Part shown: piece after piece, positions 30,826 to 44,200 of the stretch
Position numbering within the stretch: the first letter of the stretch is position 1
Layout of the letters: each line of letters begins with the position of its first letter
Assembly: GCA_907165135.1 (NCBI GenBank)
Contig: OU015566.1
Location: forward strand, 434,001-498,000
Length of the DNA: 64,000 bases
Direction: 5' to 3'
Source: Oikopleura dioica
Taxonomy: Eukaryota > Animalia > Chordata
Made by a program: the position numbers and the translations under genes
The notes under the pieces: generated by a model
Database searches by the model: none
Seen by the model: only the letters and a program-made list of their open reading frames with translations
What the model was told of the DNA's origin: nothing

Positions 30826-31919
30826 AAATAAAAGAGGTTGAATACTCACGTGGGCCATTGACCATCCATCATTTCTTTTGTTTGGAATTTTGAAAAAGTT
30901 TGCGACTGTCACTGCTTGTTATTGCCAAATTGGTAAATACACTTTAGCAGTTGGAGAAGAAACTGAAGGGCTGAAAATTCTCTTTATATTATAGAAGTTT
31001 ATATTAAATGAGCAAAATTAAAATCAAACTAGATCAACAACTACCTTTTATTTAGTTTACTCTTAAAATAAACATTTTTACAAAATCGATTGATTCTTTT
31101 GAGAATACGAACGAGAGTTAAAATTCAGATAAAAATTTGATCTTTCTTTTTTTTTCAATTTCATTCAAATTTTAAGTGTTTAGTATATAGACTATTTAAT
31201 ACAGTATAAAGACAAAATTTTCTGTTTATTTTAGATTTCTTGGGTAGTAAAGAATACGAGGAGATAATTTTATTCACAAAATTTTTTCGGTGCATAAGAA
31301 ATTTTGACAAAAAAAAATGGCATCAAAAATTCAAAATTTGCAGACTTTTTCTTATGAAAACCTTTGTTTTTCTCTTTTATTCTAATTAAAATTAAGGGTA
31401 TAAACTAAGGGTAAGCGAGTATTTAACCTTTTCATTTTATTTACGCTGTAATGTTAAAGTTGCCCTGAGATATAATCTCTCATTTTCTCAAATGATTATA
31501 CCACTTTCGTTAATGTCTCTTTTCAATGTCTTATTTTCAAAAAGAAAAATCATTTGCTTTTCGAATCGTATATTCTCAACTTACAGTGATCTTGAACTCT
31601 TTTCATTCCACCCCAAAGTTGAGCTAGAAGTAAAACTTTAGAAACAAATTAATATCTTTTGAAGTGGCAGTAGGTCGGCAACTGCAAGTTACTGCCAGCC
31701 CTTGAAAAATGTAACTGCAACTGCCAACTTGGCAGTGCCAAGTAACTGCCGACATTGGCAGCTGCTAGTGGCAGTCGTGGACAAATTTCGAACTCTCTTA
31801 TCAGCGATTTAAAATGGGCGCTGCTTCGCTACAAATGCATGAGAATAGCGAATTTCGCTTCGCTACTTGTGTGTCGTATATGACACACGGATGCATTGAA
31901 ATTGTGTCATTCACTACCT

Positions 31920-32280
31920 ACGGTAGTAAAGGTAGTAAGAGAAAAAAGTTTCGGTAAAACTACAGAAATATTGTGAGCTTATTTTCTGATTAATATTTCG
32001 GTAATAGCCGAAACTTTCTTTCATTTTTACCCCCTTTTTGAGCAAAAATATTTCGGCAGGCTACCGAAATCTTTCTCACTTTTAACTTAAAAGTTTTAAG
32101 TCCTTATCAAGCAAAAACATTTCGGCAAAAAAAGCGTTGACGATCATATAATCTCATCGATTCTTTTGCAAGAAAATTATTATATCTAATTGCCGCTACC
32201 TCGGGGCTCCGCCCCTTCGGGCCTAAGATGCCGGGGTCTAGTCTAGGGTTACTAGGGTTACGTAGTATAGTCTATACTGT
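31920..32280 (+). repeat. Dispersed repeat; inverted copy at about 33320-33925 carries an extra insertion
   Basis: Shared gtttcggtaaaactacagaaatattgtgag...aattgccgctacctcggggctccgcccc sequence in opposite orientation. Confidence 0.75.
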
Positions 32281-33602
32281 ATAGAAAAATGTTTCGGTAA
32301 AAGCGACCGAAATATAAATCATTTTCAAGGGGTCAGATGTGATAAATATTTCGGCAGGCAGCCGAATGAATCTTACAAATAAGACACGTTTTTAGGAAAA
32401 AATATTTCGGTACGAGCCGAAATAAAAATCAGAAATTGATGTCTTTTGAGCAATAAAGTTTCGGCAGTTTTCTCCATTCTCATCCTGATAAGCCCTAGTA
32501 TGTGCATTGAATGAGTTTGGCTTCTGATGAGTTTTCACCTCAAAAATCTCGAGTAATTTTCTGTTCTCATATCAGAAGGAGATCATTTCTCGGGCTTTAT
32601 TTTGGAAAAATGGTGGAACCCAATGATTAAAAATTAAAACCGTCGTATTTGCTTAACGCGCGAGCGCACAAAATTTTTTCCCCGGTGAGCGCACGGCGCC
32701 CCGAACTCGGGGCAACCCCCTTTTTCTGTTCTAGCGCAAAATCAGTCCAATCTTAAATCAAAATAAGTCTTTGGCAAGTATTCTTAAACACTTTTAATTA
32801 TTTTTTAAAGTGAAAAAAGAATAATATAAATAGAAAATCCGACTTGAATCCGATAATAACTGATGACATCAGTCTGATGTTTCAATTTTAAGAGTTTTAC
32901 GAATGAAAAATCGGAAAGATATAAAAACTCTTTTGTTTCTTCGGTAAAAATTCGGGTTATTGCTAAGATAACAGTTTGGGCAAGTTTTTTTATGAAAATA
33001 ACAAAATTTCAAAATAATTTTATGTATTTTTGCCCAAAGTTGCCTTTTCTTATCAATACCAAAATCAAAAATTTTCAGAAAAAAAGTTTTTTTCGACGTC
33101 AAAACTGTTTTTCTCGTAAAATTTTAGCCCCAAAAAGATGGGGTCTCGAAAAATTTTGTCCACAAAAAATTGGAGAAAATTGAGGATAAAGGGGCTCCGC
33201 CCCGAGTTCGGGGCCCCGTGCGCTCACGCGTTGAATAAAAAATAGGGTGAGGGGGCACCAGCAAAAATGACGGAACAAACTTACCCGAGGGGGATAGGCT
33301 AGGGTTAGTTAGGATTACTGAAGGTCACCCTAAGTAACCCTAGACTAGACCCCGGCATCTTAGGCCCATGGGGCGGAGCCCCGAGGTAGCGGCAATTAGA
33401 TATCATAATTTTCTTCCAAAAGAATCGATGAGATTATATGATCGTCAACGCTTTTTTTGCCGAAAAGTTTTTGCTTGATAAGGACTAAAAAGTGAGGAAG
33501 ATTTCGGAAGCCTGCCGAAATATTTTTGCTCAAAAAGGGGGAAAAATGAAAGAAAGTTTCGGCTGTTACCGAAATATTAATCAGAAAATAATCACAATAT
33601 TT

Positions 33603-33866
33603 TGTTTGGTATTTTATTTGTAGTAAAGCTTTCGGTAGCAAGCTACCATCATCAGTACTAAAAAAGTTGTAAAATATTGGAACGAAGAAGTCTTTTCACC
33701 TTTGAGAGGCTTTTAAGGCACACTAAAGTTTCGAAAGAGAAAATTGGAGATAGTTGAATTTGGTCTAGAAAAAACTATAACCGACTCTGTTCTAAGCTCT
33801 ATTTTAAGCTTAACTACAAATAAAATACCAAACAAAATATCTTATGATGTCAAACAACCAGAGAAC
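33603..33866 (-). mobile_element. Non-coding Penelope-like mini-element with hammerhead ribozyme and inverted tail
   Basis: 264-nt insertion absent from the sister repeat copy, flanked by an 11-nt direct repeat TCACAATATTT (33592-33602 and 33867-33877). It carries a hammerhead, AATAAA, and a 35-nt inverted repeat (33597-33631 / 33806-33840). Confidence 0.7.
33621..33660 (-). ncRNA. Minimal type I hammerhead ribozyme
   Basis: Minus strand UAGUA-CUGAUGA-U-GGUAGC(UU)GCUACC-GAAA-GC-UU^UACUA: 5-bp stem I, 6-bp stem II, intact core, palindromic AGCU stem III, followed by AATAAA at 33618-33613. Confidence 0.85.
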
Positions 33867-34554
33867 TCACAATATTTCTGTAGTTTTACCGAAACATTTT
33901 TCCTTACTACCTTAACTACACATTGTCGTAAGTAGGACTTTTTTTCCGCCGGAGGAGAAATGTTATTTTTGGGTTGTGGGTCGGGTTTAGGTATCTGCCT
34001 GGGACTAAGTTCGAGCTCATCCTGATTGGGCTCGAGCTTGTATCAGAATTCGAAATTTATTGGCAGTACTGCCACGACTGCCACAGGCAGCTGCCAATTT
34101 CGGCAGTCACATGGCAGTGGCAGTTACATTTTTCAAGGGCTGGCAGTACCTGGCAGCTGCCAACCTACTGCCACCTCGAAAGATATTATTAATATCATAT
34201 TAATTTCGGTGTTTCCTACCTGAGTTTTCTTCAACTCAAGCGCACACTCTTTTAAAGATTTCACTTCGAATTTAGTTCAACGTTACAAACTTTTGTGAAG
34301 ACTTAACAAAAATTTTTGCAAAGTCGCCGCCCAACACCCTCACAAAGATGCTCTAAATGCGGGGGTTTGAGTCTGGAGAGGGCCATTTTCGGCATTATTG
34401 CCATTTTTGGTCTTCAGACCCGCCTTCAATAAATTACCCTAACTCTCCATCATAAATAGAAAAAAAAATCTCCGAAAATTTCCGCTTGGTGGGGGGGTCG
34501 ACTAAAAATTTTTCTGCGACCACTCTCTCATTATTTGTCTAAGAAAATATTTCG

Positions 34555-41286: not shown

Positions 41287-44200
41287 TCAATTAAAAGCAG
41301 TTATAACTTCTTTGCCAGTAGCTCGGACGAGGACTGCTCGACAAATGTTTTTAGTCAAAGAGTCAAGAAATCGCATAAAGTGACGTTCAGTTTCTTCGTC
41401 GTGATCAATTGGGAAGGGTGGCATGTTGATGAAGACAAGATCCGAAGAAGCGGAATGCTTTTGAATAAGTCGATTTAGACCAGATGCCTCATGAATTTTC
41501 TTAAAAATAATCTTTTATCAAAGCATTTTCATAAAGCCTTAACTCTCATGACGGTAGCTCTCGGTTTAAGTTTTTTAAAACTTGAGATAGCACTGTTCAT
41601 AATACTTGTTCTTGCGACATTCATCACATGATCAATGTCTCTTGCAACCGTCTTTCGCGAGGGGCTTTCCGATGTTGCATAAGCATCTGTGTCCTCATCA
41701 CTGATTTCAACGATGTTCACTGAATATTTTATGTTAATTAACTTCGGCAATAATGCATATAATGAGTTGAGTTTCCATCATTTTATTGGGGAGTCACTTA
41801 ATAGCGCCGCCTTGCGCCGCCCAGTCCTGCTTCAAATTTTTCTTATCGAAGATTTTCGGCGTTTCAATGATGATTTTTTTCTGTTTTCTTATCAAAACGT
41901 TTATTCTCGTATATTTGAATAATCTGACCACCAGAAAAAAGAATACTTATAATTTAGGGTGTAATTATTGGGAGTCTAAATTATCTCCAGATTTCGCATA
42001 AAATCATCAATTTATTAAGCAAGCGACGGGCCAAAGGCCCTTACGCGCGCATTTTCTGGTAAAGAACTCATTGGGTTGGCGGGGCCCAACTTTCGCTCTT
42101 GTTCTGATCATTTAGTTTGGTCAGGATTTGGTCAAGGCGGCGCAAGGCGGCGCTATTCAGTACCCCCCTTTTATTGTGTTGAACGTTTTCGAGCAAAGCT
42201 CTTCATCAGAACACTAGGAGAAGGTAGAAACATAAGGAACAGAAAGGAAGAGTTAACCTGTAAAATTGTGCGGATGGGACTGACTCAAATTTTCTAGGTG
42301 CCAAAGACTTGGACAAAAAAACAGAACGTCTAGAGAATTTTTACGTGCGCCGCAGGGGCAAAAATGACAGGGGCACCGGAGTGCGCACGTAAAAGCCCCA
42401 TGTGACATGGGCCATGTCAGTTTTACACAAAGAGAACGGCCTTATGAGCGACTTGTTTATTCAAAATTGGAGATTGTAGCTTAATTTCAAGTGCTTCTGT
42501 TTGTTTTCTTTCTGTGAAAGGTAAATTTCGATGAAGTACCGAAAATCTCGATCGGAGGAACTGAGCTTTAATTGAAGGTTTGGTAGCACCCGGTAGCGCA
42601 TTTAGACCGGTCTCATATTGGTCACATTCATTGATATGCGGGTAAATGGCGGTATTTCCACTCGATTGCCCATGTTGCTCGATTCGGGCTTGGAGATTTT
42701 CACTTTCGCCGATGTAACTATTATGGCAAAGGCATTGAAATTTATACACGCAATTAACTGCTTTCAAGGGATCTGTTTTCGAATACAGATTATTTAAAAT
42801 CGTGTTTCGGATTGTAATCGTCTTGGAAGCGACAAGAACATTGTATTTCGGAGCGATTTCATGAAAAATATTTTTGATATTTTTAATAACCCGGCGCACT
42901 TTAAAATCCGTGAATGGGACTAAAAGGGAAAAATTTCTATCGGGTCGTTCTTGCTTTTCAAGTGCCCAGTCTATCATCTTTGGTCTAGGATTTTCTGCCT
43001 GATCTCGAGCCGAATTGATTGCTGACATAGTGAAGCCGGAATCAAGGTTCTTTTTTATGATGATTTTGTGATCTTTACGCTTTTCAGCCTCGGTTGAATT
43101 TTTCATATTTGATCTCTGAAAATCCCCAATTATTAACTCATTTTTAAAGTTTTTCAGGGCAACGCCCGTGTTACAGTGCATTGTTTTCCCGAGCTTTTGA
43201 TTTCAAAAAAATTACTCCCTTCCGGGCAATGAAGTTTAAAATCCAAAAATTTGAGTTCTCCGTCGACTGGTAGGTCTGTCGTAAATTTCAAATTTGAATG
43301 GGCTTGTTGGAAGGCCTTGGTAACTTCTGCCCTGTTTCCGATGGGTGTGATATGGAGGAGATCATCCATAAATCTTTTGTAGGCAATAATTTTGCCCTGT
43401 TTTTGAAATTTTTCAACAATCGGTTTCTCGATCTTTGAAAGGAAAAAATTTGCTAGGATCGTAGAAAAGGATGCACCCATACTGAGGCCCTTTTACGTGC
43501 GCGCTCCGGTGCCCCTGTCATTTTCGCGGCGCACGTACAAATTCTTTAGACGTTCTGTTTTTTTGTCCAAGTCTTTGGCACCTAGAAAATTTGAGTCAGT
43601 CCAATCCGCACAATTTTACAGGTTAACTCTTCCTTTCTGTTTCTTATGTTTCTACCTTCTCCTAGCGTTCTGATGAAGAGCTTTGCTCGAAAACGTTCAA
43701 CACAATAAAATGATGGAAACTCAATTATAAAACGTCAACTTCAATATAATAATGAGTTGATACTTCTTACTCAAGAAATTAACTTAAAGACGACCACCCT
43801 CATCGGATTTTTCTTTCAATAACTGGAAATTTTTATAGACACCATGTTTTTGATTCTAAAGAATATAGCTTGTTTAATTCAACTTTCGTAGCGACTAAAC
43901 GCGAGGTCGAATCTTTTTTATTTCCAGAGCAAGCCTACTTAATAATGCACGAAAAACTCAATTCTGGTATTTTTCTTTAATTTTCACCTAAATTTTTCAA
44001 GAGTCTAGAGCGACTTGAAATCTTACGGTCGCGATTTCTAAAAATTTTTCCACTTATCCGCTAAAACTAAACCGTGTTCTCTGTTGTTATGGTGCTAAGC
44101 TAGAAAATTGAAAGAATAAAATTCTCAAACTCGGTCATATTTTCATTCTAGTATTCTTCTCTTTCTTGCTCTTGCTTTTCTTCCCTGCACGCTTTATCGC

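Follow-up and report, generated by a model that had tools for sequence, protein, structure and literature searches.

The question raised by this locus is whether a short non-coding insertion carrying a hammerhead ribozyme motif belongs to a mobile family of its own or is a fragment of a larger retroelement. It lies in the 64-kb window analysed here (the whole 64,000-nt stretch of Oikopleura dioica DNA), which is soft-masked, AT-rich eukaryotic DNA. Our analysis indicated that the insert is likely to be a dead-on-arrival, ORF-less integration product of a Penelope-like element (PLE) family with a hammerhead-bearing pLTR.

The insert region is hosted by a large inverted repeat with arms at ~31650-32220 and ~33365-34188, and both the filled and the empty site are found within the 64-kb window. 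The direct repeat TCACAATATTT is present at 33592-33602 (copy 1 of the target-site duplication) and again at 33867-33877 (copy 2), 11/11 identical, and the sequence between them, 33603-33866 on the minus strand, is the whole ORF-less PLE-derived insertion of 264 nt. In the sister repeat, which runs on the opposite strand, the 11-mer occurs as a single copy and without an insert at 31966-31976 (plus strand, AAATATTGTGA), which identifies the empty target site. The flanks align with the sister repeat at ~95% when the insert is removed, a value taken from a local alignment in which the insert was excised and both duplication copies were kept, which leaves an 8-column gap at the 11-mer. The last 6 nt of duplication copy 1 also match the element's own continuation, which means a 6-nt microhomology at the 3' junction. 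Inside the insert we found only ORFs of 21-40 codons, and the longer ORFs just overlap it from the flanks, so the 264-nt insert holds no ORF above 40 codons and no RT/EN ORF of its own. The original prediction of a 264-nt insertion with an 11-nt duplication is therefore borne out by the 11/11 repeat and the empty sister site, and its description of the insert as lacking an ORF agrees with a longest internal ORF of 40 codons.

The internal anatomy of the insert is that of two unequal arms. The direct arm (33603-33772, minus strand) is a 5'-truncated pLTR according to its alignment to the family pLTRs, and the window copy is without roughly the first 80 nt of the pLTR. Its 3' end lies 10 nt past the AATAAA at 33613-33618 (minus strand), where the direct arms of the family end, and we refer to this point as the short start site; the AATAAA itself is invariant in 9/9 distinct aligned family copies. 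The inverted arm (33806-33834, plus strand) is a reverse copy of the last 29 nt of the element, which starts at the helix III palindrome of the hammerhead and copies up to the direct-arm 3' end with one mismatch, at the base immediately 3' of the predicted cleavage site. The inverted arm alone is followed by an AC-rich tail of 32 nt (33835-33866, plus strand), which ends at an identical position in independent insertions, the long start site. Between the arms there is a junction filler of 33 nt (33773-33805), which overlaps 2.2 repeats of a 12-nt unit at 33785-33810 and gave only weak, gapped matches to pLTR sequence in either orientation. Taken as an inverted repeat, the arms are 33597-33631 and 33806-33840, 35 nt in length and 97% complementary, and this is the predicted inverted copy of the element's own 3' end near its other end.

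Inverted repeats of 35 nt, a flanking direct repeat and the absence of an ORF could also be read as a MITE, i.e. a small DNA transposon with terminal inverted repeats and a target duplication, in which the hammerhead-like motif would be coincidental. However, the inverted repeat of the insert is terminal at one end only, and at the other end it is 26 nt inside the element, or 32 nt if the 6 repeat nt that fall within the target duplication are discounted. The hammerhead motif and the relatives of the insert, described below, bear on this reading as well.

For the hammerhead search we used a descriptor built from published min-HHR features, which required the core CUGANGA...GAAA with one additional nucleotide behind A9, a G10.1-C11.1 pair, a palindromic helix III and minimum lengths of 3 bp for helix I and 4 bp for helix II. 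In the 64-kb window the descriptor matched a minimal type-I hammerhead motif at 33621-33660 (minus strand) and two other places, both inside the large PLE at 41767-43724, and it gave zero matches on the reversed sequence and in 200 shuffles. The motif begins with a helix I of 5 bp and the core CUGAUGA followed by an unpaired U; next come a helix II of 5 bp capped by a loop of 4 nt, GAAA, AGCU as the palindrome of helix III, U17 and the return strand of helix I, after which comes the AATAAA; the predicted cut is between 33626 and 33625. All the required positions are in place in the window motif (C3-U4-G5-A6-N7-G8-A9, G12-A13-A14, a non-G at 17 and the A15.1/U16.1 pair). Genome-wide we counted 14 occurrences of the exact hammerhead pattern of the family, against 0 for the control.

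Comparison of nine distinct copies gave covariation support for the structure of the motif. The core is invariant apart from position 7 (A/U/G), the unpaired U after A9 is present in 9/9 copies, and G10.1-C11.1 in 7/9, the window copy included. Helix II had compensatory double changes in 4/6 pairs, paired cells amounted to 88% as observed and to 20-50% with the partner slid, and 0/500 shuffles reached the observed covariation score. Helix I is nearly invariant and so uninformative for covariation, and the helix III palindrome AGCU is invariant in the family of the insert, while other PLE families of the genome have the palindromes AGATCT, ACCGGT and AACGTT. The block from the hammerhead to AATAAA had 34/47 invariant columns versus 52/105 in the rest of the pLTR (p = 0.013). 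This hammerhead has all the features published for min-HHRs (PMC4209133), which are covariation, a short helix I, the additional base behind A9, G10.1-C11.1 and a palindromic 15.2-16.2. The Rfam hammerhead models did not report the motif, either at the gathering threshold or at E up to 10, but this silence is not evidence against it because the motif is a minimal hammerhead without helix III. The descriptor, the core and the covariation of helix II thus bear out the predicted minimal hammerhead with AATAAA at the end of the insert, and a hammerhead that covaries counts against the coincidental motif of the MITE reading.

A motif of this kind could mean that the locus is active, either as a regulatory site or as a producer of circRNA, i.e. 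a functional retrozyme in place, and the intact hammerhead core with a poly(A) signal behind it would be in favor of such a role. The isolated 53-nt motif is predicted to fold with helices I and II. But the predicted fold of the whole 264-nt RNA (-58.7 kcal/mol, z = -3.3) contains a panhandle of ~30 bp, in which the 3' end is paired with the inverted arm and helix I and the cleavage site are buried. Moreover, the 4-nt palindromic helix III of a single motif requires a second copy, and in the window we found no second hammerhead nearby that could complete helix III and no tandem partner. Published min-HHRs cleave weakly, and only as dimers or with protein (PMC11167929, PMC4209133). The ribozyme at 33621-33660 is therefore probably inert, a silent, inherited motif, because a single motif needs a helix III partner and the predicted panhandle hides the cleavage site, and we see very little chance that a functional retrozyme is located here.

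By chaining genome matches and the hammerhead pattern, we reached a full-length relative at G000:C5:15850500-15856000 (hereafter the C5:15.85 Mb element). It has a 12-nt duplication and consists of an inverted pLTR with its tail, a direct pLTR followed by the tail, an ORF of 822 aa and a second pLTR; this second direct pLTR ends 14 nt past AATAAA, and the element carries the same hammerhead as the insert. An RT motif (FVDD) and a motif of the GIY-YIG type can be seen in the 822-aa ORF. Pfam gave no match for this ORF, even at E = 10, and the PLE identity of the protein rests on BLASTP to the large PLE of the window (its C-terminal, GIY-YIG ORF fragment of 252 aa, E 2e-23, 27% identity), on its nearest Atlas clusters (RVT_1, HTH_animal and GIY-YIG) and on the visible motifs. 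On these grounds we assign the C5:15.85 Mb element as an autonomous PLE of a second family.

The direct arm of the insert aligned with the pLTR of this element at 69% over 175 nt (E 4e-7), and the homology spans the arm from the conserved TCTAGACCAAAT block to its 3' end. Intermediates were found in the copy at C5:3.41 Mb, with 84% identity to the direct arm, and in the copies at C5:7.38 and 12.95 Mb, with 77-78%. The 32-nt tail of the insert matches the spacer between pLTR and ATG of the C5:15.85 Mb element, and an AC-rich 20-mer of the tail is common to three sublineages with two or three changes. Judged by this pLTR homology, the insert belongs to the second PLE family, which is unrelated in DNA to the large PLE at 41767-43724, and the predicted second family with PLE layout was right. 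The search for an autonomous partner, which the original prediction had proposed, succeeded in part: the relative at C5:15.85 Mb was found, but at 69% in the pLTR, and none closer than ~70% is in the assembly. The whole-genome DNA search with the insert gave few matches, and together with the same search using the neighbouring sublineage it detected no closer pLTR in an autonomous copy of the assembly. Nor did we find an autonomous partner by the tail pattern with up to 3 mismatches (the matches at C1:4187334 and C1:13461129 were left out), and tblastn at all short-copy loci found no RT coding sequence within 1.5 kb of the short copies.

We compared the insert with its ORF-less relatives, each of which has its own duplication of 11-13 nt and a different build. 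In the window sublineage, the copy at C3:1.86 Mb has ~60 nt and comprises the hammerhead and 3' end only, the window copy has 264 nt with a short inverted arm with tail and a truncated direct arm, and the copy at C5:3.41 Mb has 282 nt with a complete pLTR and a direct tail but no inverted arm; all three have 11-nt duplications. In the neighbouring sublineage, the copy at C5:12.95 Mb (316 nt) starts with the tail and 17 nt in inverted orientation, followed by the full pLTR, and the copy at C5:7.38 Mb (~565 nt) is an inverted dimer, both again with 11-nt duplications. The copy at C1:0.65 Mb, which belongs to the autonomous family (94-95%), is an inverted dimer of ~500 nt with a 13-nt duplication, so ORF-less stubs of inverted pLTRs with a target duplication also arise from the autonomous family itself. 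The signature of the insert, duplication plus inverted copy and tail, recurs in five relatives, and in every two-armed copy the inverted arm stops at the tail end and the direct arm 10-14 nt past AATAAA. The MITE reading was rejected on the asymmetric termini and on the homology of the body with a pLTR that belongs to an RT/GIY-YIG element; the relatives at C5:3.41 Mb and C3:1.86 Mb, which have no inverted arm yet have the 11-nt duplication, also contradict it, and we regard it as highly improbable.

The same comparison does not support the distinct non-autonomous, retrozyme-like family of the original prediction. The copies have homology to the pLTR of an autonomous PLE, they come in three lengths and layouts, and they are not tandem: no tandem array with the period of the element was found, with one copy in the window and single or inverted copies only elsewhere. 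Constant-length copies with duplications had been expected, and what we found were duplications with lengths of ~60, 264 and 282 nt in the window sublineage, essentially the variably truncated ends of a PLE that the original prediction had named as evidence against such a family. A SINE-like family of constant length is likewise not what these three layouts represent, and unlike in such a family the shared homology covers the whole direct arm and not merely the 3' end.

A genuine non-autonomous lineage can still be proposed, in which pLTR-plus-tail units, each made up of hairpin, hammerhead, AATAAA and tail, would be transcribed alone and mobilised in trans by the RT/GIY-YIG protein of a related autonomous PLE. 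In favor of it, the window and C5:12.95 Mb sublineages have no autonomous copy in the assembly, and in the neighbouring sublineage two independent ORF-less insertions are 99% identical; this suggests that the sublineage was recently active although no autonomous source is visible, and it counts against a by-product. Several ORF-less copies begin exactly at the 5' hairpin of the pLTR, like a defined unit, and this also counts against a by-product. Because the hammerhead, both start sites and the tail all precede the ATG, these signals could be retained in a unit without an ORF, and the hammerhead-to-AATAAA block is the better conserved part of the pLTR. In addition, animal retrozymes have been argued to derive from PLE pLTRs (Li et al. 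2026 preprint), and non-autonomous PLE derivatives have been reported for Chlamys elements (PMC8557442). However, the copy numbers are tiny (2-3 in the window sublineage and 3-6 in the neighbouring one), length and architecture differ in every copy, the window copy misses the start of the pLTR, and the autonomous family yields the same ORF-less stubs while a tandem array is missing. The missing autonomous copy is itself weak evidence because the assembly merges the sequence of a single male into one haploid representation (PMC8008620). We consider a trans-mobilised lineage of this kind unlikely. We prefer the integration by-product because the lengths vary, the copies are very few and such stubs are also made by the autonomous family.

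As an integration by-product, the insert can be derived from the way in which PLEs are known to integrate. Work on the anole PLE showed that its protein cuts the two strands of AT-rich targets and extends both of them, and that cDNA synthesis begins at two neighbouring internal sites of an AC-rich stem-loop; the interval between these sites is the genomic tail (PMC11167929). In the typical PLE layout, the 5' end carries a 5'-truncated copy in inverted orientation, and a tail of 30-40 bp is found at one end (PMC8557442). The insert fits PLE integration because its end points match the two RT start sites, the cleavage of both strands and the tail (PMC11167929). We infer the order of events and the priming from both strands from this published in vitro work on the anole PLE.

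In the proposed mechanism, the RT/GIY-YIG protein would cut both strands of an AT-rich target ~11 nt apart, which would give the duplication. One strand would prime cDNA at the short start site, 10 nt past AATAAA here and 10-14 nt elsewhere, and this cDNA would halt after ~170-200 nt to form the direct arm including the hammerhead. The other strand would prime within the AC-rich tail, at the long start site, which lies 32 nt downstream of the short one, and its cDNA would halt after ~60 nt to form the inverted arm with its tail. The two short cDNAs would finally be joined via a small filler. In L1 twin priming, cDNA synthesis on one RNA is primed from both strands of a staggered break, and the outcome is a 5'-truncated insert with an inverted segment. 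PLEs differ from L1 in their GIY-YIG nuclease and in having two defined internal start sites, which put a fixed tail on one arm. If the insert was formed by the proposed mechanism, the hammerhead, the AATAAA and the tail would be features inherited from the parental pLTR/5'-UTR and not adaptations of a mini-element. The 33-nt junction filler and the 6-nt match between target and RNA at the 3' junction are unaccounted for by the mechanism; 'no homology' initiation was reported for the anole PLE, from which the microhomology of the window insert differs, and both the filler and the microhomology count against the by-product reading.

Most properties of the insert have counterparts in known elements. 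It shares with canonical PLEs (Craig et al. 2021, PMC8557442; Frangieh et al. 2024, PMC11167929) the inverted 5'-truncated copy, the tail of 30-40 bp at one end, the AT-rich target, the two adjacent AC-rich cDNA ends and the hammerhead near the junction of pLTR and ORF. In the anole PLE, however, the hammerhead and the start sites are within the first 120 nt of the ORF, whereas in the family of the insert they are upstream of the ATG. Dispersed single min-HHRs have already been read as truncated PLEs (Cervera & De la Pena 2014, PMC4209133), and most genomic min-HHR motifs in that study are single and ORF-less, as is the insert. The ribozyme architecture also corresponds: helix I has 4-5 bp, helix II is long, helix III is minimal and palindromic, A9 and G10.1 are separated by an unpaired base, and G10.1 pairs with C11.1. 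Shared as well are the location in a pLTR and the occurrence of paired motifs on opposite strands at distances of 100-700 bp. What differs from that study is that this is a new sequence family in O. dioica, with the duplication, the tail and two end points resolved per copy. With the animal non-LTR retrozymes (Cervera & De la Pena 2020, PMC7229834; Li et al. 2026 preprint) the insert has in common that it is ORF-less, hammerhead-bearing and probably PLE-derived. But animal retrozymes are tandem units of 150-400 nt with canonical type-I hammerheads and circRNAs (PMC7229834), whereas the insert is dispersed and solitary, has an inverted arm and carries a hammerhead of the minimal type. The insert is a truncated PLE copy with a min-HHR, new in its sequence and not a new class.

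The family of the insert is not isolated in this genome. A six-frame genome search with the 822-aa protein gave at least 56 matches, many in open frames of 820-850 codons, and the hammerhead descriptor found 40 motifs at those PLE loci versus 0 in the controls. The usual layout at these loci, other PLE families included, is an inverted motif, a motif, the ORF and a motif. The paper on the O. dioica OKI2018_I69 genome described PLEs as "almost absent" from the assembly (PMC8008620). Our searches show a genome with many PLE families whose ORFs appear intact, and the Pfam miss on one tested ORF may help explain why PLEs land among unclassified repeats.

A bolder extension of the trans-mobilised lineage would have ORF-less pLTR-plus-tail lineages propagating themselves via a PLE with a ~70% pLTR and being recognised through the conserved hammerhead-AATAAA-tail module. 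We think this rather improbable, but if true, it would mean dispersed, non-tandem, retrozyme-like PLE parasites in a compact chordate genome and would offer a natural experiment on the RNA features needed by the PLE reverse transcriptase. The element itself is ordinary, as truncated ORF-less PLE copies with minimal hammerheads are known from many animals. Its value is that it and its relatives give a copy-by-copy natural record of the PLE integration signature, i.e. cDNA start sites fixed at two positions, an inverted arm, a tail confined to one arm and duplications of 11-13 nt. This record agrees with the in vitro study of one vertebrate PLE (PMC11167929), with all the signals lying upstream of the ORF here.

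A large inverted repeat (window 31650-32220 and 33365-34188) hosts the 264-nt insert in one of its arms, which are about 570 nt long, 86-95% identical, separated by about 1.1 kb and studded with TTTCGG...CCGAAA mini-hairpins. In form, this host repeat resembles a foldback-like element or one with long TIRs. At the 3' junction of the insert, the target site and the element RNA agree over six bases (33597-33602 and 33835-33840), directly downstream of the short start site for cDNA at the 3' end of the direct arm, so the target duplication may be 5 nt plus microhomology instead of 11 nt. The corresponding match in other copies was 0-2 nt. At 33773-33810, where the two arms join, 2.2 copies of a 12-nt unit were present in a sequence that had no clear source in the pLTR.

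The pLTR opens with a hairpin (11-nt stem, loop of about 19 nt), and in both the full-length autonomous Penelope-like element (PLE; L040:1300-1375) and an ORF-less dimer (L041:1575-1625), a single shared copy of this hairpin was the meeting point of the inverted and direct arms. Joining of both arms in one shared hairpin suggests that two cDNA ends anneal via its palindromic stem. Separately, a 35-nt piece of PLE tail from the C5:12.95 Mb sublineage, which neighbours the insert's own, was seen inside a different repeat that occurs at C5:12.22 Mb and C1:10.88 Mb, at the same position in both (L034:~1500-1535 and L035:~1500-1535), with neither pLTR nor ORF adjoining.

A genome-wide six-frame search of the assembly gave at least 56 matches to the PLE RT/GIY-YIG protein (loci L045-L074), many of which run uninterrupted for 820-850 codons, and the matches fell into numerous divergent families with 25-41% amino acid identity. 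The helix III palindromes varied by family (AGCT, AGATCT, ACCGGT and AACGTT; loci L046-L074); in all of them A9 is followed by the unpaired base and G10.1 pairs with C11.1. The abundance of protein matches contrasts with the paper whose published statistics agree with those of this assembly (O. dioica OKI2018_I69; PMC8008620), in which Penelope-like elements were called "almost absent"; they may be inside the 44% unclassified repeats of that study. In the apparently intact 822-aa protein of the full-length element (L040:1608-4076), a GIY-YIG block and the RT motif FVDD can be seen, and its Atlas neighbours carry RVT_1/HTH_animal/GIY-YIG. Searching this protein against Pfam-A returned no family, even at E = 10. 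The family of this protein would escape profile-based TE annotation.
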